Shown here: positions 1,152-63,164 of the stretch, in pieces
Numbering within the stretch: the first letter of the stretch is position 1
How the letters are laid out: each line of letters begins with the position of its first letter
From: Hemiscyllium ocellatum
Taxonomy: Eukaryota
Direction of reading: 5' to 3'
Length of the DNA: 64,000 nucleotides
Assembly (NCBI RefSeq): GCF_020745735.1
Contig: NC_083438.1
Span: forward strand, 32,362,443 to 32,426,442
Position numbers and translations under genes: made by a program
The notes under the pieces: model-generated
What the model saw: only the letters and a program-made list of their open reading frames with translations
What the model was told of the DNA's origin: nothing
The model's database searches: none

Positions 1152-1196
1152 CATGATCCGCTTCTGGGGTTTCACTTGGGCCTTGGGTTGGACAAA
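1152..1196 (-). CDS. 45-nt stalk exon of IgV-gene copy A ((V)CPTQGPSETPEADH(G))
   Basis: Splice sites gttgtgttttccag| and |gtgagc, phase 1-1. Same length and flanking intron as the copy C stalk exon at 31853-31897. Confidence 0.7.
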
Positions 1197-2439
1197 CTGG
1201 AAAACACAACAGTGAAACGTGAAACAGATCCAATGTGTACCTTCCACTCCCCCTCCCTCAGTTCCTCAACCACTGAAACCCTCATCTGTGCCTTTATGAT
1301 TCAGATACTGCAATATTCTCCTGGTCAGCGTGTCACATTGAACCCTCTGTTATCTCTCCATCCGTACTTCCCAGACCTCCCTTCCCCCACACCCCTCCCA
1401 TTGGCTGCCTGATTCTTTCCCCTCAGGATGAGGCTCCAGTGAGTATAATGGATTATAAAAGAGCAAATGTAGTGAGGCTGTGAACCTCCTGTGAGGGTTT
1501 GTAGGTTGGGATGATGTTTGCCCAAACAGTGCTGGAGGAATATGAACACGAGGCTGAGGATTCTAAAAACCAAGTGACATTGCAGAGCCAAAAATCACAT
1601 CAATACATTCTCAGGACCAGATGTACCAGCTCTACATCCCCACAGCAGGGTTTGTATTAACAGGCTAAACCCAGCCATTTCCTGACACACAAGGAAAAAC
1701 AACAGGATTGTTTTAAGTTAAAAACGTTGAGATGTGTCGGGGACAAGCCCAGTGTTTAATGTCCCCCTGGAGAAGGTGGGGCTGACCCACTTCATGACCT
1801 GAGTCAGTGCCGCCTGGTGAGGGTCCTCCCACGGTGCCGTTAGCGAGGGAGTTCCAGCATTTGGACCCAGTGACGATGAAGGAACAGTCGGCCTCTCTCC
1901 GTGTCAGGACGGTGTGCTGGAGACTCAGAGGGGAACAAGTGATCTGACGGGGGTATTGCTCGAGTGGTTTCTCACCACTTGATCCTGGAGTCCTCTATCA
2001 CATGAAATAATCAGGACCCGGAACGTTTAAATCTCCTCCCACAGTTCCCAGACCAGGGAAGTGAGGGGTTGTTGAGGAGAAAAAGCATTAGGTCCAAAGA
2101 CGTGCAAATTCTGTTAAACTCACCGTGATCTGATGTGAACGGAGGAGAAAACGTTCTCCAGGTTTTCAAGTTCCCAAACTCCACATAATAAACATCTTTA
2201 GTTGAATTTTTCAGATATCGAATATCTATGATGCACACGTTGTAGCAGCCGGACTGATTAAAAGATGCCCTATAATTCCCAGAGCAGGTTAAGCCATTGC
2301 AAAGTATCTCATCTATTCCACGTTTAAGGACTGGCTTCTGCTCCTCAGTTATACATTTATTTATCATTATATTCGCTGGTCGTTCAGTGGGTGCTGAAAG
2401 AGACAAAATAACAGCTTGAAACAACTTTTCATTTTTAAG

Positions 2440-4482: not shown

Positions 4483-4683
4483 CTTTACAGAGACACGAAC
4501 ATGTTGATGAAAGTGCTCAGCCATCCTGTCTCAAATCGGACACACGATCTGGTTCCGGTCTGTTTCCCTGAGGTCAGAGATCAGACATTACCAGTTACCA
4601 TGTTCCAGTTGATCTTTGAACAGGTTTGTACTTTTCTGATCTAACGTACTTATTCTGTCAAATCATCATTCCCACCGACAAAC
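4483..4683 (-). pseudogene. Disrupted 3' part of an IgV exon (copy A)
   Basis: Minus strand reads FVGGNDDLTE*...STNLFKDQLEHGNW*CLISDLRETDRNQIVCPI*DRMAEHFHQHVRVSVK. It has stops, has lost its donor, and its 5' half is replaced by CR1. Confidence 0.85.
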
Positions 4684-4699
4684 CAGTCTAAAAGCTAAC

Positions 4700-5555
4700 A
4701 ATCTGACCGGAGGACAACATTGCTAAGTTTGCAGGTGACACCATGATAAGTGGAGGGACAGATAGTGTGGCATACGCAGGGAGGCTGCAGAAGGACTTGG
4801 GTAGTCTAGGAAATGGACTAAGTAATACCAGTGGGATACAATGTGGCTAATAGAGTCATAGAGATGTATAGCATGCAAACAGACCCTTCGATCCAACTTG
4901 TCCACACTGACCAGCTATCCCAACTCAATCTAGTCCCACCTGCCAGCACCCGGCCCATATCCCTCCAAACCCTTCCTATTCATCTACCCATCCAAATGCT
5001 TCTTAAATGTTGCAATTGTACCACCTCCACCACATCCTCTGGCTAATAATGAGGTTATGCAGTTTGGTCAGAAGAAGAGAGGCACATATTCTAAAGGGGA
5101 AAGGTTTCAGAAATCTGAAGCATAAAGAGATTCAGGGCTCTCTTCAAGTTAACGTACAGTTCAGTTGGCTGTTAGGAAGGCAAACGCAATGGTAGCATTC
5201 ATTTCGAGGGGGCTAGAATACAAGAACAGGGATGTACTGCTAAGGTCCGGTCAGATCGCAGCTGAGTATTGAGAGCAGTTTCAGTCCCCAGATCTAAGGA
5301 AGGATGCGCTGGCCTTGGAGGAGATCCAGGGGTTTACAAGAATGATCCCAGAGATGAAGGGCTTGTCATGTCAGAAGTAGTAGAGAGACTGGAAATGGAG
5401 AAGACATTACCATGAGATAGAGAGACAAGGACCAGAGGGCACAGGCTCAGAGGGAAGGAACAACCATTTTGAACTGAGAGGGAGTGGATTTTTCCAGCAG
5501 AGTGTGGTGAATCTGTGGAACCCATTGCCGCTCACTCATTGTCTCAAGTCATTGT
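4700..5555 (+). mobile_element. CR1-like LINE fragment, with a short inverted CR1 3' end nested at ~4855-5045
   Basis: AAGTTTGCAGGTGACACC (KFADDT-like), GCAGAAGGACTTGG, TTCCAGCAGAGTGTGGTGAATCTGTGGAA. Confidence 0.75.
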
Positions 5556-5750: not shown

Positions 5751-6717
5751 TCTTTGAATATCTTTGGTAAATTAGCACTCAGCGTTTCAAACTTCCCAAC
5801 GTTCCTCCCTGTCTGTCCAGCATGATCCAATGTAAGAGCTGAAAACACATGCAGTAGTTTAGAAACAGATTTACCTGGTACAGGTGTGTTCAGTCCAGGT
5901 GTAGAAGCTCGCTCTAAAAAAAAAACAGGCGTTTAGTATGGTGTGTGAAACAAACTACAGAAATGTTCAGAGACTATATCGGGGTATAGGGAAACACATC
6001 CAGGGAGGAATGAGGCTTGATCAGGAGGAATCAGGAACAGGATTTCCAAGTGAAAACAGTATAGGGGTGAGGCAGATGGTGTGAAAGGGGCCAAGGCAAT
6101 GTGGTTCCTCACCTCCCTCCACCACTAACCTGTCAGACCATATCCCTCCCCTCTCCATCCAGTATAGCCTGATCCAGCCTCAGCCAAGGACATGAAGCCC
6201 AATCCTGAGTCCCGATTACCCCACTCCCCTTCCTCAGTGACAGGTCCCAGTTCTACTTACCAATGCTGGAATTAAGAAAACAGACCCCAGTGCCCAGGAA
6301 TCTGTCACACTCCCACTGAATCCCAGTTTCTATCCCAACATCAGCGACTATAAAAACAAAAACAAAAACTAAAACTGGGAAAACAAAAACTGAAGTTGGT
6401 GGAAGTCACTGGACCTGGAATGTTAACTCTTTACAGATGTTGCCAGAGCTGCTGAGCTTTTCCAGCAACTTCTGTTTTTGTTGTCACTGAGTGTAGTTCA
6501 GTAGCTGGATGTCACTGTTCACATCCCAGGGGTTATTCTGAAGACACTAACTGCCTTCCCTACAGTTCTCTCTCACAGTCACAGTGTGTAATGTGTCCCA
6601 CTCCCTCAGTGGGTCCACTTGCAGCCCACACAGCACCTTGAAGCAAGAGGAATTCCTGATTCCCCCCACCCCCAGCCTTTGATCCTGCTGAAATGTTCCA
6701 GCACTCACAGCACTGAC

Positions 6718-6784
6718 CTGAAACAGCAGCAACAACATTTAGCAGCAGAAGTAGCGAGGGGTGTAGTTTCTGTGAGCCATGTCC
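6718..6784 (-). CDS. Leader (signal-peptide) exon of copy A: GHGSQKLHPSLLLLLNVVAAVS(G)
   Basis: Acceptor tgtgttttcttgttgcag|, donor |gtcagt, 67 nt, phase 0-1, hydrophobic Leu run. Confidence 0.75.
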
Positions 6785-7829: not shown

Positions 7830-8460
7830 AACTGAGAAGTTCCAGCCCTTTCTGTCTGTCTCGGAGATTGTCAGCATTTCCTTTTAATAAAGAGGTGAGT
7901 GCTGGGGGGGGGGGGTGATGAGGGAGAGAGAGTTTCCCCCCAGATCCTCCTCCCTCCCTCCCTCCGTGTCCCCGGGTGGGAGACACTGACAGTAAGTACC
8001 TGCAGCTCCTTTCCCGGGACCGGGACTGCGATCAGGATCAGAGGCAGACACTGACAGGAGACCGAGAGGCTGCTGAGAAACATTTGGTAAAACTCCGTGT
8101 TGGAGGGAGAGCAGGGTGTGTCTCAGTCAGATACAGCCCGGAGCCGGCCCTACAATGTCCCACTGACTTCACTCCTGGTCATTAAAGTTCGCGCTACAGC
8201 CACCGAGGGGGGGCAGTGGGCGTGTCTGTTAAAGACTGATCCATATTGTAGAGGGGTGTACCATTTCCTGACCCCGCCCCTCTTCTTCTCCCCAGCTCTG
8301 GATTCACAATTTTCCGGGAGTCCGCACTTGGATCCTGGTCTCATTCCAATCCTTCCAGGAGTAAAGCAGTTTTGACCCGGCTTTTCCCGACAGGAGCTGT
8401 ACCCGGATCCATCACACCTCCCCCTCTCTCCAGGTTCGAATGGGAGAACCCAAACAAAGA
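7830..8460 (-). promoter_or_regulatory. GC-rich promoter/first-exon block of copy A (putative ATG exon 8000-8083)
   Basis: Paralogous with 16740-17400, 28600-29300 and 53380-54090. It contains GC boxes and lies upstream of the leader exon in all four copies. Confidence 0.6.
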
Positions 8461-9065: not shown

Positions 9066-9209
9066 TTTCCAAATAAACCTATTGGGCTATTGGTGTTGTG
9101 TGATTTTTAACTTGGCCTGAGAATGGGAAGACATCTCCCACAGTGCAGCTGAAAAAGATTCACATCTCACCGTCCCCCGCTGTCTGTAAACCCCCCCCCC
9201 CCACCCCAC

Positions 9210-10298
9210 TATTAACAACAACGGCATACTTAAACTACTGGACCTGTGCCTCACTACACACTTCACATTCAACAACCAGAACAAATCAACGGCACACCCA
9301 TGGGCTCACCGATCTCTGGACTCATAGCAGAAGCAGTAATGCAAAGGTTAGAACAAACAGTCTTACCGCAAATACAACCCAAACTCTGGGTCAGATATGT
9401 GGATGACACCTCTGTAATCATTAAAAACACAGAAATAGAGAACACACAGCAGATCATCAACGCCACACTCACAGGAATCCGATTCACGAGAGAGGAAGAA
9501 AAGGACAACCAGCTCCCATTCCTAGACGTGATGGTACAGAGAACACCGAAAGGAGAATTCAGCACAAAGGTATACAGAAAAGCCACACACACAGACCAAG
9601 TCCTGAACATGAAAGCAACCACCCCAACACACACAAACGAAGTTGCATCAGGACACTATTCAAAAAGAGCCACAACACACTGCAGCATACCAGAACTTCA
9701 AAAAGAGGAAGACCTATACAAGGTATTCACCAAAAACGGATACCCGCGCAATTTCATCAACAGATGCCTAAGGGAAAGACAACGGAACGAGGACATGCCG
9801 CAACCAAAGGACTAGCCACACTACCATACATCAGGAGCATTTCTGAACTGACAGCCAGACTACTGCGACCACTAGGACTCCTAACTGCACACAAACCAAC
9901 AGCCACTCTCAGACAACAACTCACCAGGAAAAGGACCCGATACCCAGCATAAGCAAAACTAATGTAGTGTACAAAATCCCATGCAAGGACTGCACAAAAC
10001 ACTACATAGGACAAACAGGAAGACAGCTAACGACTCGCATCCATGAACACCAACTAGCCACAAAATGGCACGACCAGCTATCCTTAGTAGCCACACATGC
10101 AGATGACAAGCAACATGAATTCGACTGGGACAACACTACTATTATAGGGCAAGCCAAACATAGAACAGCCAGGGAATTCCTAGAGGCATGGCACTCATCC
10201 ACAGATTTTATCAACAAACACATCGACCTGGACCCAATATACCGGCCACTGCAGCGGACAGCAAGAACTGACAACCGGAAGCGGCAGAGACAAGCCAC
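9210..10298 (+). mobile_element. Penelope-like retroelement, 5'-truncated: RT C-terminal half plus GIY-YIG endonuclease, frameshifted
   Basis: QINGTPMGSPISGLIAEAVM...KLWVRYVDDT...FTREEEKDNQLPFLDV (PLE RT) and YKIPCKDCTKHYIGQTGRQLTTRIHEH (GIY-YIG). Confidence 0.95.
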
Positions 10299-10596
10299 AT
10301 CTGCTGTGTGTTCTCTATTTCTGTGTTTTTAATGATTACAAAGGTGTCATCCACATATCTGACCCAGAGTTTGGGTTGTATTTGCAGTAAGACTGTTTGT
10401 TCTAACCTTTGCATTACTGCTTCTGCTATAAGTCCAGAGATCAGTGAGCCCATGGGTGTGCCGTTGATTTGTTCGTATATCTGGTTGTTGAATGTGAAGT
10501 GTGTAGTGAGGCACAGGTCCAGTAGTTTAAGTATGCCGTTGTTGTTAATAGTGGGGGGGGGGGGGGGGGGTTTACAGACAGCGGGGGACGGTGAGC
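10299..10596 (-). repeat. Inverted duplicate of 9161-9454 (PLE RT start plus its poly-C flank)
   Basis: ORF 10211-10612(-) repeats INGTPMGSLISGLIAEAVM...YVDDT. The poly-G at 10553-10570 mirrors the poly-C at 9190-9207. Confidence 0.9.
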
Positions 10597-11375: not shown

Positions 11376-12530
11376 CTCATAGAGTCATCGAGTCATTGGG
11401 ATGTACAGCACAGAAATAGACCCTTCGGTCCAACTCATGCCAACCAGGTATCCCAACCCAATCTAGTCCCACCTGCCAGCACCCGGCCCATATCCCTCCA
11501 AACCCTTCCTAGTCACATACCCATCCAAATGCCTTTTACATGTTGCAATTGTACTAGCCTCCACCACTTCATCTGGCAACTCATTCCATACATGTACCAC
11601 CCTCCGCGTGAAAAAGTTGCCCCTTAGGTCTCTTTTATACCTTTCCCCTCTCCCCCTCCAGTTCTGAACTCCCCAACCCCAAGAACTCAAATCCTCCAAC
11701 CCTGGTAACATCTTTGTAAATCTTTTCTGAACCCTTTCAAGTTTCACAACATCTTTCCGATAGGAAGGAGACCAGAACTGCATGCAATATTCCAACAGTG
11801 GCCCAACCAATGTCCTGTACAGCCGCAACATGACCTCCCAACTCCTGTACTCAATACACTGATTCATAATGGAAAGTATACCAAACACCTTCTTCACTAT
11901 CCTATCTACCTGCGACTCCACTTTCAAGGAGCTATGAACCTGCACTCTAAAGTTTCTTTGTTCAGCAACACTCCCTAGGACCTTACCATTAAATGTACAA
12001 GTCCTGCTAAGATTTGCTTTCTCAAAATGCAGCACCTTGCATTTATCTGGATTAAACTCCATCTGCCACTTCTCAGCCCATTGGCCCATCTGATCAAGAT
12101 GACGTTGTCATCTGAGGTAACCTTCTTCGCTGTCTACTACACCTCCAATTTTGATGTCATTTGCAAACTTACTAACTATACCTCTTGTGTCACGTCCGAA
12201 TCATTTATGTAAATGACAAAAAGTAGTGGACCCAGCACCGATCCTTGTGGCACTCCACTGGTCACAGACCTCCAGTCTGAAAAAATCCCCACCACCACCG
12301 TCTGCCTTCTTCCTTCAAGCCAGTTCAGTGTCCAAATGGGTAGTTTCCCTGTATTCCATGAGATCAAAACTTGGTAACCAGTCTCCCATGGGGAACCTTA
12401 TCGAACGCCTTACTGAAGTCCACATAGATCACATCTACCGCTTTGCCCTCATCAATCCTCATTGCTACTTCTTCAAAACCTCAATCAAGTTTGTGAGACA
12501 TGATTTCCCATGCACAAAGCCATGTTGACT
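11376..12530 (-). mobile_element. CR1/HER1-like LINE, 3' 1.15 kb with terminus
   Basis: [17 protein letters not shown]...MGQWAEKWQMEFNPDKCKVLHF...FFTRRVVHVWNELP, with a (GACTCTAT)-type tail. Confidence 0.95.
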
Positions 12531-13829: not shown

Positions 13830-14500
13830 GAAAGTAAAGGAGATAGAAGGTGTTCAGTTTCTAAAATTATCGATCTCAGTTTTGAGTCCTGAAAGCTGAA
13901 GGGTCGCCATGTGGAAAATGAGACACTGATCTTCCAGTTTGCACTAGATGTCATTGGAGCACTGGAGGAGGCCTGAGGCAGAGATGTTGGTGAGGGAACA
14001 TGGTGGTGCATTGAAGTGGCAGGCAACAGGATGGTATCTGCAAATAGTACAAAGGTGTTCTGCTACACAGACTGGGCAACTGCTTTTTGTCTCTCCCAAA
14101 GTACAGGGGCAGTGAATGTGGTAGACTGGATTGTGTTAACTGCAGGTAAAGTATTGCTTCACCTGAAAGGGATGTCTGGGGCCTTGAATAGCAAGGAGGG
14201 AGGAAGCAAACAGGCAAGTATTGATTCCATTAAGGAAAACTTGTGGACAACTTCACTCTGCGGCGTTCCCCAGATTACCAGTAAACCAGAGGCTTTGCAG
14301 TTACAGGGCAGCACAACCTGCCTCCCAAGGACCCAGAACCTTCTACGATTGATGGGAAGATGCCGGGGAGGTATGGGAGGGTGATGGGAGTGGAGGTGTG
14401 GACCAGAATGTCCCGTAGACTCCCTGCAGAATGCTGACAAGGGACGGGAGGGGTATGTGTGTCCTGTGGTGGCATCTTGCTGGAGGTAGCTCAGAAGCTG
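13830..14500 (-). mobile_element. Degraded Penelope fragments flanking an IgV 5' relic
   Basis: SLRDILVHTS...GIFP linker and a RHVENETLIFQF-like GIY-YIG tail. Confidence 0.55.
14238..14340 (-). pseudogene. 5' fragment of a second IgV exon (copy B)
   Basis: Minus strand reads (G)VLGRQVVLPCNCK-ASGLLVIWGTPQSEVVHKF, homologous to GFLGEQVVLPCTYK...LLVIWRTPKSEMVHTF. Confidence 0.8.
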
Positions 14501-15207
14501 TTGTCACTGGGCTCCATTCTTTATCTGAACAGGTCAACTCCTTTCCAGGCCCCTGAGAGGAACAGCATTCACTCATTCAATGTTCAGACACACTGTCGGG
14601 CTTTAGGGGAAAACATTCCAGGGAGGAATGATGCTCAGGTCAGACTGATCAGGAGGGATCAGCAACAGGATCAGGAGTGAAAATTCCAACAGGATTGCAT
14701 TAACTGTGAAAGGTAGAAATGAAGCTTCCAAAATGATCCTGAGCAGGATCATTCCCAGCATCTTACATCCCCCCGTGGAGAGAATCCTCACAGGATCCTG
14801 GGCCGACTGGGATACACTTTCAAGGTCAGTGCACTGGGTCTTGGAAAGGCTGCTTGGGAGGGGCTGTGGGTCCCACCTCCTGCAACCCAACCTCTGGAGA
14901 CAGAAGGACCATGTTTCTGGGGGGGGGGGGGGGGGAAGTGCAGGTTCTCACACTGTTAACCCCTTCCATCACCCAGTTTGGTAGCTCCATCCTTCAGGGC
15001 TCAGCCAGCTCGCTCAATGGGGCTCATTACTGAGTGACCCTTTTTTTTTCAAAAAACTGAATTTGAATTCTGAACATGTCATGTCGGGATTTGAAGTCAT
15101 TCCCTGGATTATTAGTCCACATCGCTGGAGTAACAAAAACCCTCTGGACTACCATCCCCATAAAATCAGAGTCGCATTACAGAATACTTGAAATCAAAAC
15201 CTCTCAT

Positions 15208-15440
15208 CTGTCAGAGAGAGATGAACATGTTGATGTTGGCAGTCCCCTCAGAAATCTCACACTGATACACATTCTGGTCTGACTCCCTGAGGTCAGAGAT
15301 CAGAACTGACCAGTTGCCTTGTTCCAGTTGATCTTTGAACAGGTTTGTTCTGTTCTGAATCGTGGGTCTTGTTCTCTCAATTTATCATTCCTATCAAGAA
15401 ACGTGTGGACAATTTTCATCTTAGGTGTTACCCAGATGTA
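15208..15440 (-). pseudogene. Frameshifted IgV exon remnant (copy B, first IgV)
   Basis: IWVTPKMKIVHTFLDRNDKLREQDPRFR, then a 1-nt deletion, then RTNLFKDQLEQGNWSVLISDLRESDQNVYQCEI, then a second frameshift. The donor is mutated GT>AT and the LPC-bearing 5' part is missing. Confidence 0.88.
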
Positions 15441-15809
15441 GAAGCATCCCCAGAAGCGATCTAGGTCCTCACTTCCCTCCAGACCTTGTCAGACCTTGGT
15501 TCTGTTCCCCAATAGGTCCAGACCCTGCCCCTCCCAAGACCCAGAGCCCAATCCCCAGTCCTGGCCTGTCCACACTGCACACTCTGAGACAGGTCCGAAT
15601 GTGATCTGATCACAGCACCGCCCCAGACTCTCAGCCTAGCGTGAGAGACACTTGCCAATCTGACCGATTGTTACTCAGTGTTCTGATCCAAACTTTCTGT
15701 GTCCACTTGCAGCCCACACAGCACCTTAAAGCAAGAGGAATTCCTGATTCCCTCCACCACCCCCCCCACTTTGATCCTGCTGAAATGTTCCAGCACTCAC
15801 AGCACTGAC

Positions 15810-15879
15810 CTGAAACAGCAGCAACAACATTTAGCAGCAGCAGCAGCAGCGGGGGGAGTAGTTTCTGTGAGCTGTGTCC
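15810..15879 (-). CDS. Leader exon of copy B: GHSSQKLLPPLLLLLLNVVAAVS(G)
   Basis: 70 nt, ttgcag| ... |gtcagt, (CTG)n encoding Leu6. Confidence 0.75.
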
Positions 15880-30068: not shown

Positions 30069-30107
<39 letters not shown>

Positions 30108-46817: not shown

Positions 46818-49800
46818 CAATGTGATTGATAGATGCTTTCCAATAGCGAGAACTGGGCACTTACCAGCAGCAGTTTCCCTTCAATTAAACTGAACAGCAA
46901 CTGAAATTATCATTAATTTTACAAGTAAAGTGTTTCACACTGCCTTCAATCCAGGGTCACGACCTCCAGATTATATCTCTCTGTGCCCTCACCTCTGGTG
47001 GGCCTGTCCTTCCAGTGGGACAGGACATACCCAGGGATGGTGATCGGGGAGTCTGGGATGTTGTGTTATTTCTGTCAGTGTGACTATGTCCCACAGTGTC
47101 CCAAGTTGGACCCCAGTCCCCAGATGTTAGTGAGGGGGACTTTGCAGGGTCAGCTGGGCTAGCTGTGACATTGCTGTGTCCTGATTCGATGCCTGGCTCA
47201 CAGCCAGTGACCAATTCAGTTTTATTGTGGATTTTCCTGTCTAGGGGTGTGGTATAAACTGATTGATGTGGTCAATTAAAGAGGGCAGTTAAATGTCTCC
47301 CCCCGCCCCACTTTGTGTGGAACTGGAGTCACATATATTGAACAATGTGAATTTAAGGTCTGAAAGTACCACAGTAGGATTTGATCTCTCTCTCTCTCTC
47401 TCTCTGTTATTAATCCAGATTTCTGGATTACACGTCTAGTAACATAACCCCAGCACTCCCATCCCCATAACATCAGAGATCCAATACAGAATCCCTGAAA
47501 CAGAAACCTCTTACCTGTTACAGAGAGATGAACACGTTGATGAAAGTGTAGACCCGTCCTGTCAGAAATCTGACACTGACACTCGTCCTGGTCTGTCTCC
47601 CTGAGGTCAGACATCAGAACTGACCAGTTGCCTTGTTGAAGTTGATCTTTGAACAGGTTTGTTCTGTTTCTGAACAGTGGGTCTTGTTCTCTTAAATCAT
47701 CGCTCCCATTCACAAAAGTGTGTACCATTTCACTCTTGGGTGTCCTCCAGATTACCAGTAAATCAGAGACTGAGACATTCCCTTTGTAGGTACAGGGCAA
47801 CACAACCTGCTCCCCAAGGAACCCAGAAACTGGGACAGGCGAGTCACCTGGAAAAGATTGAAAGGATTTACCCACAGATAGACCCTCCCTGCTGGTACAT
47901 TACATCCCAAGCTTCACATGAGCATACTTCAGAGAGAAGTCAGGTGGGCAAAAAGGGGACATGAGATAGCTTGGGCCAATAGGGCTAAGGAGAACCTAAA
48001 GCGATTCTCTAAATTCATTGAGGACAAAAGGGTAACGAGGGAGAGAATAAGACCCCGCAAAGATTAGTAAGGCAGCCTTTGTGTGGAACTGCAGGTGATG
48101 GGGGAGATACTAAATAACTATTTGGCATCAATGTTTACTGTGGAGAAGGATCTGGAAGATTGAGAACTGGGTGAAACAGATAGTGACATCTTGAAAAGTG
48201 TCCATATTACAGAGAAGGTGGTGCTGGATGCCTTAAAACACATAAAGGTGGATAAATCCCCAGGACCTGATCAGGTGTACCCTAGAACTCTGTGGGAAGC
48301 TAGGGAAGTGATTGCTGGACCCGTTGCTGAGATATTTGTACCATCGAATGTCACAGGTGAGGTGCCAGAAGACTGGAGGTTGACTAATGTGATGCCACTA
48401 CTTAAGAAAGGTGGTAAGGAACAGCCGGGCAACTATAGACCAGTGAGTCTGACATTAATGGTGGGCAAGTTGTTGGAGGGAATCCTGAGGGACAGCAGTA
48501 AATGTATTTGGAAAGGCAAGGACTGATTCAGGGAAGTCAGGCTGGCTTTGTGCTTCGGAAATCATGCTCATGAACTTGATAGAGTTTTTGAAGAAGTAAC
48601 AAAGAGGGTTGATGAGGGCAGAGCGGTGGAGGTGATCTATGTGGACTTCACTAAGGAGTTTGAGAAGGTTCCTCAATGGGAGACTGGTTAGTGAGGTTAG
48701 ACAGCATGGAGTACAGGGAGAACTAGCCATTTGGATACAGAACTGGCTCGAGGGTAGAAGGCAGAGGGTGGTGGTGGAGGGTTGCTTTTCAGACTGGAGG
48801 CTTGTGATCAATGGTATGCCACAAGGATCAGTGCTGGGTCCACTCTTTTTCATCACTTATTTAACTGTTTAGATGTGAGCAGAGGAGGTAGTTAGTAGGT
48901 TTGCAGCTGACACCAAAATTGGATCATAGAATCCCTAATGTGGAAACAGACCATTGGCCCAACAAGTCCTCACTGACCCTCCAAACAGTATCCCACCCAG
49001 ACCCATTCCCCAACCCTATATTTCCCCTAAGTAACATGCCTCACATCCCTGAACACTATAGGCAATTTAGCACAGCCAATTCACCCAAACCTACACATCT
49101 TCAGACTGTGGGAGGAGACCAGAGCACCCAGAGGAAACCCACACAGACTCAGTGAGAATGTGCAAACTCCACACAGATAATTCCCTGAGGTTGGAATTGA
49201 ACCCAGATCCCTAGTGCTGCAAGGCAAAAATGCCAACCACTGAGCCACGACGCCGCATAGTGGACAGTGAAGGTTATCACAGAGTACAACGGGATCTTGA
49301 TCAGATGGGCCAATGGGCTGAGGAGTAGCAGATGGAGTTTAATTTAGATAAATGTGAGGTGCTACATTTTGGTAAGGTAAATCAGAGCAAGGCTCATACA
49401 CTTAACGGTCATGTCTTGGGCAGGTGATGCTGAACAAAGAGACCTTGGAATGCAGGTTCAGAGTTCCTTGAAAGTAGAGTCACAGGTAGATACGATAGTG
49501 AAGTAGGCCTTTGGTATGCTTTCCTTTACTGGTCAGTATTGAGGACAGGAGTTGGGAGGTCATGTTGCGGCTGTACAGGGCATTGTTAAGGCCACTTTTG
49601 GAATATTGCGTGCAATTTTGGTCTCCCAATGACAGCATTTGTAGGGTTTGAGCTCGAGGGAAAGGCGGAATAGGCTGGAGCTGTTTTCCCTGTAGTGTCA
49701 GAGGTTTGAGGGATGACCTTTTAGAGGTTTATCAAATCATGAGGGGCATGGATAGAGTGAACAGCCAAGGTCTTTTCCCCAGGGTAGGGGAGTCCAAATT

Positions 49801-52800
49801 TAGAGGGCATAGGTTTAGGGTGAGAGGGGTATGATTTTAAAAAGGACCTTTTTCACAGAGAGGGTGATGCATGGACTGAATGAGAATAGAAAGGTAAATG
49901 AATAGAAAGAATATATAGAGGGATATGGGTCAAATGCTGGTAAATGGGACTTGGTTAATTTAGGGTATCTGGATAGCATGGATGATGTGGAGTGAAGGGT
50001 CTCTTTCCATGCTGTCCCGTTCTATAATTCTATGACTCTCACTGAGTCATTTGGCAAAATATCACACAGCATTACAAACTTTCCAATGTTCCTCCCTGTC
50101 TATCCAACATGATCCAATGTAAGAGCTGAAAACACATGCAGTAGTTTAGAAACAGATTTACCTGGTACAGGTGTGTTCGGTCCAGGTGTAGGAGCTCGCT
50201 CTAAAGGAAACATCGTGTGGTAAGTACGGTGTGTGAAACAAACTGCAGAAATGTTCAGAGACTCTATTGGGCTTTAGGGAAACACGCCCAGGGAGGAATG
50301 AGGCTCAGGTCAGACGGAGCAGGAGGGATCAGGAACAGATAAAAGCAAATTACTACAGATGCTGGAATCTGAAACCAAAAGAGAAAATGCTGGAACATCT
50401 CAGCAAGTCTAGCAGCATCTGTAAGGAGAGAAAAGAGCTGACGTTTCGAGTCTAATTATCCCTGTATCAAAGTTTTGACAAAGGGTCAGTTAGACTCGAA
50501 ACATCAGCACTTTTCTCTCCTTACAGATGCTGCCAGACCTGCTGAGATTTTCCAGCATTTTCCCTTTTGGTATCAGCAACAGGATCGGGAGTGAAAATTC
50601 CAACAGGATTGCATTAACTGGGAAGGGTAGAATGGAAGTTTCCAGAGTGACCCTGAGCAGGATCATTCCCAGCAGCTTACATCCCCCTGTGGAGAGAATC
50701 CTCACAGGATCCTGGGCCGACTGGGATACACTTTCAAGGTCAGTGCACTGGGTCTTGGAAAGGCTGCTTGGGAGGGACTGTGGGTCCCACCTCCTGCAGC
50801 CCAACCTCTGGAGACGGAAGGACCATGTTTCTGGGGAGGAAGTGCAGGTTCTCACACTGTTAACCCCTTCCATCACCCAGTTTGGTAGCTCCATCCTTCA
50901 GGGCTCAGTCAGCTCGCTCAGTGGGGTTTATTACTGAGTGACTCTTGGGGATGGACAGGGAAGATCCACTCAGTAGATTCTGTGTCTGTGTGACCCTCAG
51001 TTGTTCCCCCAAGTGGGGGTGAACATTGTGGGGTACCCATTGATCAGCTGAGGGAGGGCAGTAGATGAAAATCAGCAGGAGGTTTCCAGGCCCATGTTTG
51101 ACCCGAGGCTGAGAGACTTCATGGGGCTCAGAGTCAATGTTGAGGAGCCCAATCCCCTCTCCCTCCTGACTGTATCCCCCTGGGGTGATCGGACACAGCC
51201 CGGGATGGTGATAGTGCAGTCTGGGGTAGACAGGGGATTCTGTCAGGATGGCTCTGTCACACAGCCCAACATACAGAGCCCAGATGTCAGTGACTGGGTC
51301 TTTGCAGAGTCAACTGGGCTGGGCGTGTCTTTGTTGTTGCCTGGTTCAATCCCTGGGTCACAGCCAGTGGGTCTGTTCAGGTTTAATCTTGTTCCTCTTC
51401 ATCATGGAGAGATTGAAAATCATTGTCAACTCAGGTAAATGTCCCCCAGGTTGGTGTGGGACTGGAGTCACAGAGACCAGACCGGGTAAGGACGGCAGAT
51501 TTCCTTCCCTAAAGGGACAAGAGGGAACCAGTTGGGGTTTTACAACAATCCAACAGCTTCATGGTCAGCAGTTCTGAGGATGGGTCACTCAACCCAAAAC
51601 ATGAACTCTGCTTTCTCTCCAGAGGTGCTGCCAGACCTGCAGAGCTTTTCCAGCAATTTCTGTTTTTGTTTCTGATTTACAGCATCTGCAGTTCTTTTGA
51701 TTTTTATTTAGCTTCATGGTCTCTTTTATTGCAGCTGAATTTATATTTCCAGATTATAATTCAAATACACTCCTTAGATTGTCTCAGAATGGCATATAAC
51801 CCCTGCACAAACACAGACAGAAAATCACAGATTAAATACTGAACATCTGAAGGAGATCGCTCTCACCTTTTACAGAGAGATCGACATAATGATGCTCTGA
51901 ATAAAAAAGCACACCAACTCTCTTTCGAATCCAACACTGATACACATCCTGGTCTGTCTCCCTGAGGTCAGAGATCAGAACTGACCAGTTCCCTTGTTCC
52001 AGTTGATCTTTGAACAGGTTCGCTCGGTTTCTGAACCGTGGGTCTTGTTGGGCCAAATCATCATTCCCATCGACAAACACGTTTAAAGTTTCATGCTTCT
52101 GTGTCCCCTAGATTACCAGTAAATCAGAGACTGGGACATTCCCTTTGTAGGTACAGGGCAGCACAACCTGCTCCCCAAGGAACCCAGAAACTGGGACAGG
52201 CGAGTCACCTGGAAAAGATGGAAAGTATTTATCCACAGATAGACCCTCCCTGCTGGTACATTACATCCCAAGCTTCACTGCGATGCTGGATTTACAAGAA
52301 GCTCTGATCAGTAACTCACTGCTTTCATTTCTGGGGGAAGGTTAAAGCTCAGACATTGAGGGTCTTCAACTAAAAGCAGCTTGTGCTGGATATATGTCAG
52401 CACTGAGCAGCGGGACAGCACTTTGAATCACATGGTTCCCATTTGGACACCCACTGGGAGACTGGGGAGGGATTGGGAGCAAAGATCTTCAATGGGAGGT
52501 GGTGATCAGGAGTAAAACACTGAAGCTCTAACTTAAAGGGGGAAATGGGTGGGGAAGTGTACCCAAGGATGTGCAGGGAGTCTGAAACAACTTGCCTCTC
52601 CCCCACAACACGGAGACTGTCCCTCCCATGACCCAAAGCCTCACCTCCTCTCCCACATTCTGAGACAATTCCCACCTCTCTTTGATCCAAGGACTTTCCC
52701 AGATTCCTGATTCCAGTGCTCAGGACCCAGCCCCCCCATCCCAGTGTCACTGAGTATTGCTCAGGGTCCAGATGCCACTGTTCCTATCCCAGGGGTTAAT

Positions 52801-53631
52801 CTGAAGATATTAAATGCCTTCCTTTCAGCTCCCTCTCATGATCACGGTGTGTAATGTGAACCTACTGTGTCCCACTCCCTCAGTGGGTCCACTTGCAGCC
52901 CACACAGCACCTTAAAGCAAGAGGAATTCCTGATTCCCCCCACCCCCAGCCTTTGATCCTGCTGAAATGTTCCAGCACTCACAGCACTGACCTGAAACAG
53001 CAGCAACAACATTTAGCAGCAGCAGCAGCAGCAGCGGGGGGAGTAGTTTCTGTGAGCTGTGTCCCTGCAACAAGAAAACACAGTGAGTCCCTTTCCAACA
53101 GATTCCCTTCCTGATCAGGTTGATGATCCCGCTCCGCCCTGTCCCCGGGTGATGCCTGACAGATACAGCCCATGAGAAGGGCTGGGACATGGGGACTCGG
53201 AGTGAGAGGGAGGGCGGGGACAGACAACGCCGTCAGTAAAATAACTGTTTCCTTGCCGTTTGTCAAATTAATCTTTAGAGATCGTTCTGCATCACTTTAC
53301 AACCGCCGCAGTCTCGGTCTAACCCTCTTTTCAATGTTTCAATTCAACCTCCCCCTCCCTCAGTTCACTCACAGATCACTTTATAAACTTCTGAGAAGTT
53401 CCAGCCCTTTCTGTCTCTCTGAGATTGTCAGCATTTCCTTTTAATAAAGAGGTGAGTGCTGGGGGGGTGATGAGGGAGAGAGAGTTTCCCCCCAGATCCC
53501 CCTCCCTCCCTCCGTGTCCCCGGGTGGGAGACACTGACAGTAAGTACCTGCAGCTCCTTTCCCGGGACCGGGACTGCGATCAGGATCAGAGGCAGACACT
53601 GACAGGAGACCGAGAAGCTGCTGAGAAACAT
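44951..53631 (-). CDS. IgV membrane-protein gene copy D with two IgV exons; V1 has a nonsense codon, and skipping V1 gives an intact ~251-aa protein
   Basis: Exons 53548-53631 (putative), 52992-53064, [51867-52208 with stop], 47515-47847, 46487-46592 and 44951-45110. Without V1 they sum to 756 nt (252 codons). Confidence 0.65.
46487..46592 (-). CDS. TM exon of copy D ((D)PGRSTGERVGLGFGIGAVFVVAGIVGHIVLKRQR)
   Basis: gtctctag| ... AAG|gtgagt, 106 nt. Confidence 0.86.
47515..47847 (-). CDS. Intact IgV exon V2 of copy D
   Basis: GDSPVPVSGFLGEQVVLPCTYKGNVSVSDLLVIWRTPKSEMVHTFVNGSDDLREQDPLFRNRTNLFKDQLQQGNWSVLMSDLRETDQDECQCQISDRTGLHFHQRVHLSVT. 333 nt, ttttccag| ... |gtaaga. Confidence 0.93.
47930..50036 (+). 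mobile_element. CR1/HER1-like LINE, ~1.8 kb 3' portion, interrupted by a SINE
   Basis: LKHIKVDKSPGPDQVYPRTLWEAREVIAGP...[21 protein letters not shown], 3' GACTC tail. Confidence 0.92.
48925..49257 (-). mobile_element. HE1-like V-SINE nested in CR1
   Basis: GTGGAAACAGACCATTGGCCCAACAAG...GAGAATGTGCAAACTCCACACAG...CCACTGAGCCAC. Confidence 0.85.
51867..52208 (-). pseudogene. IgV exon V1 of copy D, full length, single nonsense mutation at the core Trp (TAG 52108-52110)
   Basis: ...LPCTYKGNVPVSDLLVI*GTQKHETLNVFVDGNDDLAQQDPRFRNRANLFKDQLEQGNWSVLISDLRETDQDVYQCWIRKRVGVLFYSEHHYVDLSVK. 342 nt with intact splice sites. Confidence 0.9.
52992..53064 (-). CDS. Leader exon of copy D: GHSSQKLLPPLLLLLLLNVVAAVS(G)
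   Basis: 73 nt, Leu7, canonical splice sites. Confidence 0.8.
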
Positions 53632-54090: not shown

Positions 54091-54998
54091 TTGTGTCACA
54101 GTCGAGAGGAAAAAAGATCACCCGAAAATCATAGATTCCTCACTGTCTGACCAAGACTGCCAGGTTGGTCGTCGCATTATGTGTGCTTCCTGCACAGAAG
54201 AGTCGGGTTGTTACAATCCACATGTACAAGACGACAGGAACGACTGGGAGGCCAGGGAAGGGCTGGAGAGAAAAGGAGAAGCCCCACACAAGGCTGAGGG
54301 ACATGGAAAGGAGACAGGCCCTTTAGGTGGGGAGCAGAGGGCTCAATATCTAAACTTCATGGGGAGAAGGGAACAACGTTAATGGAGGGATTGAAGGGAA
54401 ATAAAAGGTGGGATCTCCCAGACTCACCAGAGGAGGGAAAGATCTGGTGGGAAACAGAAAAAAAAACTGGGACAGAAGTCAGGGAAAGGCCTGGAGAAAT
54501 CATCTTGGGAATATCAGAGTTTTCTGGAATGTTAGGAAGAGGGAAGTGTGTGTGTGTGTGTGTGTTCAGAAACTGCCTTATTCCAGAGAGGGAGGGAGAA
54601 ACGAGGGGCAGGATGAGACGGAAATGTAGAAGTGGGCAGTGGGCTGGGGAGAGGGGGCTTCCTGAGGGCACATTGAGCTGGGATATGAAGGGCTGGGGTC
54701 AGGTAGGCAGCTGGGGCGGGGTGGGGGCGGAGTTTGGAGCAGAGGCTGAGGGGAGCTGAGCAGGAGACAGAGGGAGGGAGGGAGAGGGGGAGGAGATTCA
54801 GGCTGTCTCCCACAGGGATAGATGTCCTGTCTCCAGACACTGGCGGTGAAATGTTGCTGCTGAATCTGGGTTGAAATAATTGATGTTTGGTTTTGCGGGG
54901 GGAGAGAGAGTCAGGTTGGTCAAACAGCACGTGGAGCTCTGTGGGTGCCCTGCAGTGTCACTCACTGAAAATTTCTCCCTAATGTGCTCTGTGTTGTG

Positions 54999-55394: not shown

Positions 55395-56337
55395 TGTGAC
55401 CAGAAAGCCGAAATACATTGCCACAACTGTGCAGGAAGCTCTTGTCATTTTCAAATTCCAAACCCTCAAACCCAAGTTACAGATGAAATAATGACCTTTG
55501 TCCACAAGTCCATCAGGAAGTAGTCAGCACGTAGTGTCCTTGAGACCCTTTGGGAAAAAGGGAGGGCATATCCTATCGAGTGGTTCCCTGAGCAGACTGT
55601 CAAAGCCATTTGGCAGAATGCCTCACTGCCAGAACTTTCCAACTAGCACCAAGACATGGCTTGGCTGGTGGTGAGAAGGGCTCTGCCTGTGAGATCATTC
55701 ATGCACGCCTGGACTCTCTGCCGCACCGCACGCTGCCCTCGAAGCGGCTGCGGGGGGGATGAGACTGTCACACACCTCCTTCTGGAATGTGCCTTCGCAG
55801 AAGAAGTCTGGAGAGGAATGCAGTGGTGTTTGTCGAGGTTCGTCCCGAGCAGCGCCGTGACGCGTGTCTCCGTGCTCTACGGTCTGTTCCCCAGGACGCA
55901 CACCGAGACGAACATCAACTGTGCCTGGAGGATCATCAACTCGGTGAAGGACGCTCTCTGGGTGGTCGGAAACCTGTTGATCTTCCAGCTGAAGGAGTTG
56001 ACCCTGACTGAGTGTTGCAGACTGGCACATTCCAAGGTCCAGGACTACGTGTTGAGGGACGTGCTGAAGCTCCGGGCAGCTGCCGCCAAGGCGCGGTGGG
56101 GAAAGACCACTGTGTAACATCTGCCTGCCTAAGCACAGGGTCCGACGCAATAAGGGGGCTCCGCTGACCCCCCCCCCCGCTAAATATGTGGATAGTAATC
56201 GTACAGAATGGTATATATGAATGATTACTGTCTCTGTATGCCAAGAAATGGAAGGTTTTACGAATGTATGGCATGACCAATTGTACAGATTATCAAAATA
56301 TTTTATGAATAAAGTATATTTTGAATTTAAAAAAATT
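55395..56337 (+). mobile_element. Tx1/L1-group non-LTR retrotransposon, 5'-truncated (ORF2 C-terminal zinc knuckle, 3' UTR, poly-A)
   Basis: MAWLVVRRALPVRSFMH...CPRSGCGGDETVTHLLLECAFAEEVW (C-x4-C...ETxxH-x4-C motif)...KARWGKTTV*. AATAAA at ~56310 and an A-tail at 56329-56337. Confidence 0.85.
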
Positions 56338-59131: not shown

Positions 59132-62100
59132 TCAGTGCTGGACAGCCCCGTTCCCCAGAAGGTTTTGTTCTCCGGCCGCTCCATCCTGATGCTCAGGTGC
59201 TGTTGGTACAAGGCTCCGTGCTTCACCTGAACAGGCCACCTCTCTCAAAGGGACACCATTCGATGCTTCATTTCGATCGCTGGAGTGTCGGCTTCGAGCA
59301 CCATTCCTAGAAGAGAGACACAAGCAGAGAACAGGTTAGAAGAATCCACCATTTTGGACGTGTGTGTAAAGGAGCTGTTCAGGAGCACAGACCCAGTAAA
59401 TAACCCTCAACATCTTGGGGATCAATGGCAGCTGGAAAATGGTAAAGACGGCCTTCCCAAGTCATCGAGTCTTCCGATGCCTGTATTAAGGGGACGGGTT
59501 ATAGAGTGTTGGGGAAAGACTTGCATTTGTACAGCACCCAGAACAGAACATCCAAACATAATTCATGGGAGGAATCAGACAGAAGATGATACCAAGCCAC
59601 ATGAAAACAAACTGAGGCAGAAAGGTGGGACTTAAGGAACATCAAAAGAAGAGAACAGGAAGAGGCAAAGAAGTTTGTGATGGGAATGACCACAATTATG
59701 AGCTTTCAGGCAGCTGAACGTCTGGTCACCAATGGTGAAACAATGAGAAACTGGACAATGTTTTCGAGGAGCAAGGGAGGAGTATGGAGATCTCAGAGGG
59801 TTACAGATCTGGAGGAGGTGCCAGGGGAAAAGCACAGAGGGAGGAGAATACTAGAATCAAATCATTGCTGAACAAAGTCAGTGTGGGTCAGTGAGGGCAG
59901 GGTGATATCTGAATAATTAGGGAAAGAGCAAACACTGAATAAAGTTCATCAACCTGACCCAACAAGAACACATTTATATAAATGATTTGGATGTGAATAT
60001 AGGAGGTATGACTCGCAAGTTTGCAGATGATACCAACATAGCTGGTGCAGTGGACAGTGAAGATTATCTCAGAATACAATGGGATCATGATCAGATGGGC
60101 CAATGGGCTGAGGAGTGGCAGAGCACCTTCAATTGAGACAAACGTGAGGTGTTGCATTTCGATAAGACAAACCAGGATACATAATGGTAGGGTCCTGGGA
60201 AATGTTGCTGAACAAAGAGACTGAAGGGTGCAGGTACATAGCTCCCTGGAGGTGGAGGCACAGGTAGACAGGCTGGTGAAGGCAGCATTTGGCACATTTC
60301 CCTTCGTTGGTCAGTGCATTGAGTTTAGGAGTTGGGACGTCATGTTGCAGCTGTACAAGACATTGGTGAGGCCACGTTTGGAACACTGTGTACAATTCTG
60401 GTCCTCATTATATCGGAAAAATGATGTTTAACTTGAAGGTGCAGAAAAGATTTAAGGATATTGCTGCAAATGGAGGGTTTGTGCTAGAGAGAGGCTGAAT
60501 TGGCTGGGGCTATTTTCACTGGAGTGGTGACTGAGGATGACCTTCTAGAAGTTTATAAAATCATGAGGGACATGAATAGGATGAATGGCCAAGGCCTTTT
60601 CCCAGGGTAGATGAGTCCAAAACTAGAGGGCCTAGATTTAGTTGAGAGGGGAAAGATATATAAACATCCTGGAGGGGTAACAATTTCACACAGAGGGGGG
60701 TGTGTTTATGGAATGAGCTGCCAGAGAGAGTAGTGGAGGTTTGTACAATTGCAATATTTAAAGGGCATCTGGATTGTGCATGAATAGGAAAAGGTTAAAG
60801 AGGGATATGGGCCAAGTGCTGGTAAATAGGACCAGGTCAGATTGGGATGTCTGGTTGACGTGGATGAGTTGGATCGAAGGGTCTGTTTCGATGCTGTTTA
60901 ACTCTCTGTGGAAGAGGCTGGAGATTGCATGATGTAGCTATCAATTCTGTCAGGAACCATCGACCCAGAGTGCAAGCAAGTCACCTCGAGCCTGAGGGAC
61001 CACCCAGGGAGAAGGATTGGGGAATTGTTGAGTCTGTGATGAGAGGGATTGATATGAGAGTTTCAGCAGCAAATGAGCTGAATCAAGCAGTAGGAACAGG
61101 TGATGTGACAGATTTGAAAGTACACAGTGCGGGTGATGGACATGAGACTAGAAACTGAGCTCAGGGTTAAATGGGAAGCTGAGCTTGTAAACACTTCACT
61201 GCAACCTCACACAGTGACCAGGGAGGACTGTGTCCGGGTTTCAGGATCCCAGAGAGAATATGCAGTCAGCTTGGGGGGAGAGGGGAAAGATTTATAAAGC
61301 TCCACTCTTTTCCTCGTTATCCTTGGGGTACAGACAGACTCTAACCTCACACCTTTACTGCACTCTCTGAGCTGAGATGTCACCTTTTTTTTTGATAAAA
61401 CCTTAAGTTATCTGAGAATGTGACTTAAAAGAACTTCTGGGATTGACGTATTAATGAACCAAAACCTGCAACCTATTCTAAAAGATGAAAGACTTAACAG
61501 CAATCTAGGTCTGTTCCAAATATCACACCAGTTGCATGACACTGATCTTTTGTGATAAATTCTTATGATCCTGCCCATTAGCTACGTGACGAAGAAGCAG
61601 CACTCTGAAAGCAAATACAGTACTTCCAAATAAACCTGTTGGACTATAACAGGTTGTGTGATTTGTCCACCCTTCCTTGAATAACTTGGAAAGTAACTTT
61701 GGAGTTGCCTGTATTTTACCCATCATTATTCTCCCAAACCCCCTTTTCACTTTTGTCATTTCCTTTCTCAGTTTCTCCATGCACAGACTGTACACATCCA
61801 GGGTTTCTACTGATCCGACCACATCAGTATGTGCCATCAGGCTCCTTGGTTACAGAGAGTGGTGAACTCGGCCCGGACAATCTCCAAGGACAACCTCCCA
61901 TCTACAGAATCCCATCTACCAGGCCCACTGTCAAGGAAAGGCTGCCAGCATTCTCAAAGATCCATCCCACCCTGGCAATGCTTTTCTACAAACTCTACCA
62001 TCGGGGAGAGGGTACATAAGCCTAAACATACGCACCAGCCGGTCTCGAAACAGTTTCTCCGCTACTGTTGTCAGAATGCTGAATGGACTCACAAACTCTT

Positions 62101-63164
62101 AGCATTTGCCAGTAGCTGTGTTTTGGTTTTTGCTGCTGTTTCCCCATTATTTACTTATCGATGCTCCTTAACTCTCTGATCTGCCTGTATTGCTCTCAAG
62201 ACAAAGCTTTTCACTGTGCCTCAGTACACATGTCAATAAATTCAATCCAGTCTAATCCTGTACATCACTCGATACCAGGGTTTGCTGAATTTGTTGGTGC
62301 CACCCTTTACCTTTATTGGAATAGGATGGCCCTGTGCTCTCCCTATTTCCTTGGTGAGTGTGTCCCACCTGATCTTAAAACATAGAAACAGTTTTCTGTC
62401 ACAGATTTACCCAGAAGGTCCCCTCTGGCCAGGTCATATCTCCTTATTAAAATTGGCCTTCTTCAATTCAGACTTTGATTTCAAGCCTACCCTTTCCCTT
62501 TCCCAAAACAAGCTGGAATCTGACTGAGTTATGACCACTGTCGACAAACCGTTCCCCAACTGATACTTCAATCACTCGCTGAGCTTCATAACCTAAAATC
62601 AAGCCGAGGATCACTCTCTCTCGTATGGTCTTCTGAAGCTGTCCTGGATGCATTGTAAGAATTCCACACTCTAAACCTCTCACACAATGACCGAGCTATT
62701 TATCCTTGATGTTGAAATTCCCTACAATCACGACCCTATTACTTTTACATTGCCTGAGATTTGCTGAGAAAACTGCTCTTCTGTTTCTCTAAGACTCTCA
62801 GAGGGTCTGTCGGACACAACTACATCCTCTGGTTCTCCAGTGGGATAATATTTGCTCCTTTCCAATCCACGGGGACTGTTCAGCAGCAAGAGGATGACAA
62901 GCTGGAAGTGACTGGATGATGCTGCTCAATGACAGGCTGGATTGAAGCATCCTCACAGCTCAGGGAATGGACAGGGACAGAGCTCAGCAACATTTCACAC
63001 AATGTTATACAAAGATCAAAGGGTTACCATGGAAACAGTGCAACATTCCAGAACTCACCATCTTTGTCGCTTTAGGACAATGTAACCCACAATTCCTGCT
63101 ACAATAAAAACAGCAGCAATCCCGATTCCCAAACCAACTCTTGCTCCAGGGGAGAGTCCAGGAC
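59132..63164 (-). CDS. 3' part of IgV membrane-protein gene copy E (TM exon 63059-63164, cytoplasmic exon 59132-59306); upstream exons lie beyond the window
   Basis: TM (G)PGLSPGARVGLGIGIAAVFIVAGIVGYIVLKRQR. Tail (W)NGARSRHSSDRNEASNGVPLREVACSGEARSLVPTAPEHQDGAAGEQNLLGNGAVQH*. Canonical splice sites. Confidence 0.78.
59985..60905 (+). mobile_element. CR1 LINE 3' fragment inserted in the last intron of copy E (absent from copy C)
   Basis: ATAAATGATTTGGATG...AAGTTTGCAGATGATACC (KFADDT), QCIEFRSWDVMLQLYKTLVRPRLEHCVQFWS. Confidence 0.88.

Follow-up and report, generated by a model that had tools for sequence, protein, structure and literature searches.

Genes and exon plan of the cluster

A 64-kb stretch of the epaulette shark (Hemiscyllium ocellatum) genome, contig NC_083438.1, here called the window (48% G+C, with a single N run at 44607-44748), contains a cluster of type I membrane-protein genes that share one chassis. 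The genes encode immunoglobulin V-type (IgV) domains and are termed A to E. V segments were located with tblastn, using the clearest V domains as queries, and with hmmsearch, using a family profile; other exon types were located by mapping shark homologues back onto the window. Both scans agreed on seven IgV-like segments and no others, six on the minus strand (4486-4769, 14237-14332, 15209-15443, 26753-26911, 47515-47847 and 51867-52208) and one on the plus strand (30271-30615). The window also holds four start exons (MFLSS...), four poly-Leu leader exons, four 106-nt transmembrane (TM) exons and four full tail exons, together with a tail fragment at 14489-14540 and stalk micro-exons of two lengths (39 nt, n = 2; 45 nt, n = 2). 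The window belongs to a 40.2-Mb epaulette shark record, and at least 10 H. ocellatum products of the family lie on that record.

The exon order is constant and the splice sites are GT-AG: a start exon and a leader come first, followed by one or two IgV exons, a Pro/Thr-rich stalk micro-exon of 39 or 45 nt, an uncharged 106-nt TM exon and a Tyr-free tail. All ectodomain exons are in phase 1-1, so that exon skipping preserves the frame. The leader exons (6718-6784, 15810-15879, 29595-29670 and 52992-53064) differ by in-frame steps of 3, 6 or 9 nt in a CTG (Leu) run, and the poly-Leu core of the signal peptide therefore varies from 5 to 8 residues among the copies. Units of the cluster occupy both strands, and self-comparison showed the window to be a patchwork of duplicated segments of 75-99.8% identity in both orientations.

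An initial annotation of this DNA, made from the letters alone, had proposed the leader/IgV/stalk/TM/tail plan, Tyr-free tails, copies in both orientations, an orphan TM/tail module and an extra IgV relic, and the exon map bore out all of these. It had described a 45-nt stalk, which is present; a 39-nt micro-exon type (ERAPTPGPNTPVPG) exists too. The cluster is real, but the number of working IgV genes had been overstated. Only two of the seven V segments, that of gene C and the second V of gene D, are intact, and the other five are broken; a third V that had been called intact (GTQKHETLNVFVDG) has a TAG at an invariant Trp. An alternative ectodomain exon of gene A at 2124-2393 had been missed. 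Gene C is intact, and gene E is intact within its visible part. Gene A combines a dead V with a separate, unclassified ectodomain exon, and gene D gives a translatable frame only when its stopped first V is left out. Gene B, the orphan TM/tail module and two V fragments are wreckage.

Gene C lies on the plus strand at 29018-35323 and consists of six exons with canonical AG/GT sites throughout. Its 276-residue open reading frame (ORF) is residue-for-residue identical to the H. ocellatum RefSeq protein P0049, named "sodium channel subunit beta-4-like isoform X1", and the recorded gene span of 6306 nt in assembly GCA_020745735.1 matches the model. The start exon (MFLSSFSVSCQCLPLILIAVPVPGKELQ, 29018-29101) begins with ATG, ends at a GT donor and encodes residues 1-28 of P0049. 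It is followed by a leader exon that encodes the poly-Leu signal peptide and ends in phase 1 (29595-29670; AG/GT; matching P0049), and by an intact 345-nt IgV exon in phase 1-1 (30271-30615; AG/GT), which Pfam recognized as V-set (E 5e-10). The V exon leads directly to the 45-nt stalk micro-exon (VHSTQEPNEILETDYG, 31853-31897; AG/GT; present in P0049 and P0211) and then to the 106-nt TM exon with its hydrophobic stretch (32663-32768; AG/GT), leaving no membrane-proximal IgC domain. The tail exon (35149-35323; AG acceptor; 100% identical to P0049) encodes 58 Tyr-free residues ending in ...TAPEHQDGAAGEQNLLGNGAAQH and closes with TGA. A second RefSeq isoform, P0211 (161 residues), equals gene C without the V exon; in-frame exon skipping is thus modelled in RefSeq. 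The closest full-length relative of gene C, from Chiloscyllium punctatum, is 81% identical. No other called gene was listed within 10 kb of gene C.

Gene D runs on the minus strand from 53631 to 44951 and has seven exons with canonical sites, two of them encoding IgV domains. Start exon (53548-53631) and leader (52992-53064) were placed by exon mapping. The first V exon (51867-52208; 90% identical to the V of P0017) is a pseudo-exon with TAG where all family members carry Trp, and it is followed by the 39-nt stalk micro-exon ERAPTPGPNTPVPG (50162-50200; AG/GT). The second V exon (47515-47847; Pfam V-set, E 1e-9) is open, but the conserved Tyr just ahead of the second canonical Cys has become Cys (DQDECQC). 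The TM exon (46487-46592) and the tail exon with its stop (44951-45110; a variant acceptor, RKQNLHK...) were again placed by mapping. The ORF is open only with the first V skipped, and none of the retrieved RefSeq proteins maps to gene D. About 200 nt separate the gene D stop (44951) from the assembly gap at 44607-44748, which lies 3' of it and involves no exon. In self-comparison the flanks of the gap were collinear on both sides, and in the same orientation, with the 3' flanks of the paralogous units C and E, and in gene C the homologous interval follows the stop codon. The gap therefore affects no exon and no reading frame.

Gene A, on the minus strand, has its start exon at 8000-8083 and its leader at 6718-6784, followed by a 39-nt stalk micro-exon (ERASTPGLNTPVP, 5875-5913). 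Its V exon (4486-4769) is dead, with two stops and the N-terminal half gone. The RefSeq model passes over it and uses a different ectodomain exon, a 270-nt phase 1-1 exon at 2124-2393 (AG/GT), so that gene A persists as a RefSeq gene. RefSeq P0216 (LOC132833952 isoform X2, 260 residues) is 100% identical to the gene A leader and, over residues 64-153, to this exon, and its start-exon and 39-nt stalk residues agree with the gene A exons. A 45-nt stalk micro-exon (VCPTQGPSETPEADHG) follows at 1152-1196; TM and tail fall outside the window, before its start. The exon at 2124-2393, single-copy of its type in the window, encodes a Cys-rich domain of 89 residues, here called X. Domains with 27-47% identity to X occur on the same TM/tail chassis in H. 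ocellatum, C. punctatum, Scyliorhinus canicula and Cetorhinus maximus. Sequence searches of Pfam, Atlas and PDB gave no match to X, and a word-seeded homologue search returned nothing. Its AlphaFold 2 model was weak (predicted local distance difference test score, pLDDT, 64) and all-beta with seven strands, and its top fold matches were all Ig domains (E ~0.03, template modelling score ~0.5). On this model X is probably a very diverged Ig-like domain.

Gene E, also on the minus strand, is truncated by the window end, with its V exon beyond. Its TM exon (63059-63164) and its tail exon with stop (59132-59306) match the final 92 residues of RefSeq P0031, "CD276 antigen homolog isoform X2", without a single difference.

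Gene B is a pseudogene. On the minus strand, its start exon (16912-16995) and leader exon (15810-15879) are intact; its V (15209-15443) is frameshifted, has lost the region of the first Cys and carries GA in place of the GT donor. Downstream, tblastn and profile searches found an IgV fragment with the B and C strands only (14237-14332, minus strand). The orphan module on the plus strand comprises a TM exon (19195-19300), whose membrane span contains an Asp and which is preceded by neither a leader nor a V, and a tail exon with an in-frame 24-nt deletion (20668-20818); its reading frame is open. The remaining IgV relic (26753-26911, minus strand) retains the first half of the domain, with stops. 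It shares the TAG for Trp with the first V of gene D, so that this stop is real and predates their duplication.

With five of the seven V segments broken, and a Tyr-to-Cys change in the surviving V of gene D, the window could be read as a graveyard in which no copy, gene C included, yields a working protein. We consider this highly improbable: gene C has a complete ORF in six canonical exons and an 81%-identical relative in C. punctatum, hemiscylliid species share its V lineage as a well-supported clade, and RefSeq models exist for genes A, C and E.

Identity and range of the V-domain family

Pfam assigned the V exons to V-set and to no other domain. Against PDB, the family profile matched CD276 (5e-20, two domains summed), VTCN1 (4e-18) and PD-L1 (5e-14), followed by MOG, JAML, MXRA8 and CD80. 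The best single-domain solved match was the IgV of B7-H4 (VTCN1), with 69 bits against the family profile and 31% identity; MOG scored 42 bits. An AlphaFold 2 model of the gene C V domain (pLDDT 80.5) matched PD-L1, MOG, B7-H4, BTN3A1 and B7-2 in Foldseek. The V domains had been called B7/butyrophilin-type in the initial annotation, and these matches agree with that call.

The same annotation had noted the absence of IgC and B30.2 domains, which was upheld in the window and in 75 shark relatives. No IgC domain was found in the window, where tblastn with fish butyrophilin-like IgC was negative, and 20 open stretches of at least 85 residues within or downstream of genes C and D gave no Pfam match to Ig-constant (C1/C2-set) or SPRY domains. 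The tail exons end in a stop after 53-58 residues, without a B30.2 domain. All 75 shark relatives carry V-type Pfam domains only, with no IgC or B30.2. A possible B30.2 relic was considered and rejected. Fish PRY/SPRY queries in tblastn returned GNKRWDLPDSPEEGKIWWETE at 24682, 37282, 42669 and 54397 (E 0.004-0.02), a 25-residue match that resembles the end of PRY and occupies 24682-24756 (plus), 37205-37282 (minus), 42669-42746 (plus) and 54397-54471 (plus). It lies in a repeat whose copies of ~400-540 nt are about 92% identical; the copies at 37282 and 42669, at least, are in opposite orientation to the adjacent genes. Pfam did not recognize the match, and the copies within scannable open stretches (37055-37321 and 54298-54756) had no Pfam match. 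We treated it as a chance match within a repeat.

The architecture was compared with known systems. Like B7-H4 and B7-H3 (CD276), the shark proteins have an N-terminal V-set domain with the motif NRT.LF...L..GN.S..L..L...D.G.Y.C and are type I membrane proteins whose tails have no known signalling motif. Unlike both, they have no membrane-proximal IgC domain, some members carry tandem IgV domains split by a micro-exon stalk, and the family has expanded into a pseudogene-rich cluster; the conserved tail of 53-58 residues is absent from B7-H4. This likeness is one of domain comparison. Butyrophilins (BTN, BTNL) also belong to the IgV superfamily and form multigene clusters, and annotation pipelines call several shark members BTNL2- or BTN1A1-like, but the shark genes and their introns contain neither IgC nor PRY/SPRY (B30.2), and the shark tail is short. 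MOG likewise joins one IgV to a TM segment without IgC. It is, however, single-copy and has a second membrane-associated hydrophobic segment, whereas the gene C tail has no second hydrophobic stretch and the family is multigene; the MOG IgV also scores below B7-H4 against the family profile. Chicken BG shares the IgV-TM organization without IgC. BG is a multigene birth-and-death family, like the shark cluster, and its tails are long heptad-repeat coiled coils, whereas the shark tail of 53-58 residues has no heptad pattern and a conserved motif of its own.

Because the architecture of IgV, TM and short tail is also that of SCN4B, MPZ and MOG, the proteins could be non-immune adhesion or channel-auxiliary molecules, as several RefSeq names imply, and MOG, JAML and MXRA8 are indeed among the solved matches. 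We regard this as distinctly improbable. No sodium-channel beta chain occurred among the best 60 solved matches, either with the single domain or with the family profile; B7-H4 scored 69 bits against 42 for MOG; and housekeeping adhesion genes seldom form clusters of a dozen paralogues full of pseudogenes. Judged by the V-domain matches, the sodium channel beta-4 name of gene C in RefSeq is a misnomer.

The 75 relatives are all from sharks and represent five orders. They include Orectolobiformes (Hemiscyllium, two Chiloscyllium species, Rhincodon and Stegostoma), Carcharhiniformes (two Scyliorhinus species and Mustelus), Lamniformes (Cetorhinus and Carcharodon), and members from Heterodontus and Pristiophorus. 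In an exhaustive HMMER search, the 20 non-shark matches whose names were looked up were all from ray-finned fishes, mostly tandem-IgV "BTNL2/CD276-like" models, the best being 41% identical. Outside sharks, these ray-finned-fish models ("BTNL2/CD276/MOG-like"; 33-41% identity) come closest. The IgV motif is shared, often in tandem, and several models have V-set domains only, without IgC. They differ in having no counterpart of the shark leader/stalk/TM/tail chassis, and some add IgC, PRY/SPRY, lectin or leucine-rich repeat parts. From sequence comparison, either orthology or parallel loss of IgC is possible for the relation between the shark and the ray-finned-fish genes. The description of the family as B7-like, without IgC and B30.2, and found only in sharks holds.

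RefSeq names within the family are inconsistent (CD276, BTNL2, ICOS ligand, CD86, MOG, VTCN1, JAM-like, MXRA8-like, SCN4B-like and uncharacterised) and misleading; labels such as sodium channel beta-4-like, CD86-like, ICOS ligand-like, MOG-like and JAM-like are unreliable for these genes. The family appears uncharacterised. No published description was found in full-text literature, a search that did not extend to subscription journals, and papers on butyrophilin phylogenomics, immunoglobulin superfamily conservation and the whale shark genome give no account of it. The initial annotation had proposed a lineage-specific and possibly undescribed family. The restriction to sharks agrees with this, but "undescribed" is an overstatement, since genes A, C and E already exist as RefSeq models under inconsistent names. 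UrIg and UrIg2 were considered as a match and rejected, since they combine a VJ domain with C1 domains (PMC12227049). In the basking shark, the RefSeq protein P0080 (Cetorhinus maximus) joins an IgV of the family (64% identical) to KRAB and PR/SET domains under the name "PRDM7-like". This is probably a merged gene model, which hints at a PRDM9-like gene neighbouring the family in that species.

Mosaic copies, conserved tail and proposed role

The history of the copies was examined in a tree of 66 shark V domains and by segment-wise Nei-Gojobori estimates of the ratio of nonsynonymous to synonymous divergence (dN/dS) for the three pairs among the V of gene C and the two Vs of gene D. Most clades of the tree were order-specific, and among carpet sharks V lineages were common to several species, extending over Hemiscyllium, Chiloscyllium, Rhincodon and Stegostoma. 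The gene C V clustered with Chiloscyllium proteins (five rows, support 99), the first V of gene D with two other Hemiscyllium genes and one whale shark gene, and the second V of gene D fell within an 11-row carpet-shark clade.

Identity between genes C and D changes abruptly along their length. Over 1.2 kb, beginning upstream of the start exon and ending with the leader, identity is 97-100%. It is 95-99% in the last 100 nt of the leader-V intron and the first 95 nt of the V exon, and it falls to 67% in the middle of that exon. The A-C strands had a dS of 0.04-0.13 and a dN/dS of 0.36-0.55. In the C-C'-C'' segment, dS was 1.1-1.4 for gene C against each V of gene D and 0.54 between the two Vs of gene D, with a dN/dS of 0.34-0.56. 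For F-FG-G, dS was 0.30-0.58 and dN/dS 0.71-1.43, on 4-6 synonymous changes per pair. The copies are mosaics: the tracts from promoter to leader and the first third of the V exon are homogenised, and the V core belongs to old lineages that other carpet sharks share. The contrast between loops and frameworks therefore comes mainly from old lineage sequence adjoining tracts homogenised by gene conversion or unequal exchange.

The initial annotation had taken the contrast as diversification of the loops, a reading that the dN/dS of 0.34-0.56 in C-C'-C'' does not bear out, and it had suggested a dN/dS comparison across paralogues; run by segment, this reached about 1 in F-FG-G only, on small counts. 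Positive selection on the binding loops as the driver of the V differences among paralogues is unlikely. The F-FG-G ratios of 1.43, 1.08 and 0.71 in the three pairs would favour it, as would the CC' and FG loops, where entropy across the family is highest. Against it, the ratios come from few changes (4 synonymous and 14-19 replacement), synonymous change is saturated in the most divergent segment, where dN/dS is 0.34-0.56, one of the three compared exons is a pseudo-exon, and recombination and conversion are evident. A selective component in the FG region is possible on these comparisons and unproven.

Turnover was also judged from non-coding sequence. Duplicated non-coding tracts diverge by 0.4-9% in self-comparison. 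At the epaulette shark mutation rate of 7e-10 per site per generation (95% confidence interval 1.4-14.1e-10; PMC10587355), a divergence of 2.5% corresponds to about 2e7 generations. The cluster had been described as rapidly turning over, which is true only in the sense of many dead copies: V lineages are common to four genera, and duplicate tracts that differ by 2-9% are old at the measured rate.

Across 58 family V domains placed on the AlphaFold 2 model, variability was highest in the CC' loop, at alternate F-strand positions, in the FG loop and in the G strand; the A, B, D and E strands were nearly fixed. Two N-glycosylation sequons were near-fixed, NRT before strand D and NWS at the start of strand E. 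The GFCC' face is the receptor-binding face of B7-family domains.

On the cytoplasmic side, the tail of 53-58 residues ends in TAPEHQDGAAGEQNLLGNGAxQH, a motif that is almost unchanged across four orders (tail peptide TAPEHQDGAAGEQNLLGNGAVQH). Its EQNLL resembles acidic di-leucine sorting signals, with the canonical spacing not met. Tyr is missing from the tails except in a handful of models that are truncated or variant and in three where it is C-terminal, and the TM segments of genes C, D and E have no charged residue.

Signalling receptors of activating or inhibitory type, as in NITR, LILR and KIR, would be expected from a multigene family with variable V domains and birth-and-death evolution with many pseudogenes, features typical of innate receptor families. 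That the shark proteins are such receptors rather than ligands is nevertheless very doubtful. Tails without Tyr cannot form immunoreceptor tyrosine-based inhibitory, switch or activation motifs (ITIM, ITSM, ITAM), the TM segments offer no basic or acidic residue for pairing with an adaptor, except in the orphan relic, and the V domain is nearest to ligand-type B7 domains.

The explanation that we favour overall, with confidence somewhat better than even, is a shark cluster built on one chassis, with a B7-H4-like IgV and no IgC or B30.2, whose mosaic copies encode surface ligands. The proteins would act as B7-like ligands at the cell surface, not as signalling receptors, and the variable GFCC' face would contact a partner on another cell. 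The conserved ABED face would carry the two N-glycan sites, and a short and probably O-glycosylated stalk would hold the ectodomain. For the invariant tail, binding to a conserved intracellular partner that serves sorting or anchoring is probable. Only analogy makes an immune role likely.

Several points weigh against this explanation. We infer the ligand role from missing signalling motifs and from analogy, and the variability of the GFCC' face could partly reflect relaxed constraint. Gene D may be wholly dead, judging from the Cys in its surviving V at the position of a structurally conserved Tyr. No members were seen in rays, skates or chimaeras with word-seeded searches, which can miss distant kin. 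A candidate 'RNA?' run, X15, contains 57% of the V-exon words, which is a hint only.

No living lineage with antibody- and T-cell-based immunity is older than the sharks, whose co-signalling ligands are little known. A B7-like, IgC-less family that spans five shark orders, with a near-invariant tail and swappable ectodomains, offers concrete candidate ligands for shark lymphocyte receptors; if the proteins are ordinary adhesion molecules, the value lies mainly in corrected annotation. A bolder version, which we hold to be quite unlikely, would have shark-specific, diversified ligands with swappable ectodomains (B7-H4-like IgV, tandem IgV or a fast-evolving Ig-like domain) that co-evolve with a set of lymphocyte receptors, by analogy with butyrophilins and gamma-delta T-cell receptors, and would make the invariant tail motif a new sorting or signalling module.

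Repeats and mobile elements between the units

Between genes A and B, at 9166-10595, inverted terminal copies (9166-9454 against 10595-10299, 95.6% identical) surround matches to reverse transcriptase (E 4e-7) and, weakly, to GIY-YIG (E 0.007). From these matches the element looks like a Penelope-like retroelement. Reverse-transcriptase fragments of long interspersed nuclear element (LINE) type are scattered among the units at 11466-12107 (minus), 25600-26226 (minus) and 55647-56114 (plus), with weak RVT_1 matches and zf-RVT at E 1e-8; the copies at 11.7 kb and 25.7 kb share 87% identity. Three tandem arrays were also observed. The first, at 17622-18144, just upstream of the orphan TM exon, consists of about eight 66-nt units of 99.5-99.8% identity. 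The others have a 53-nt unit with 90-94% identity (16265-16642) and a unit of about 70 nt with 84-89% identity (23884-24314).

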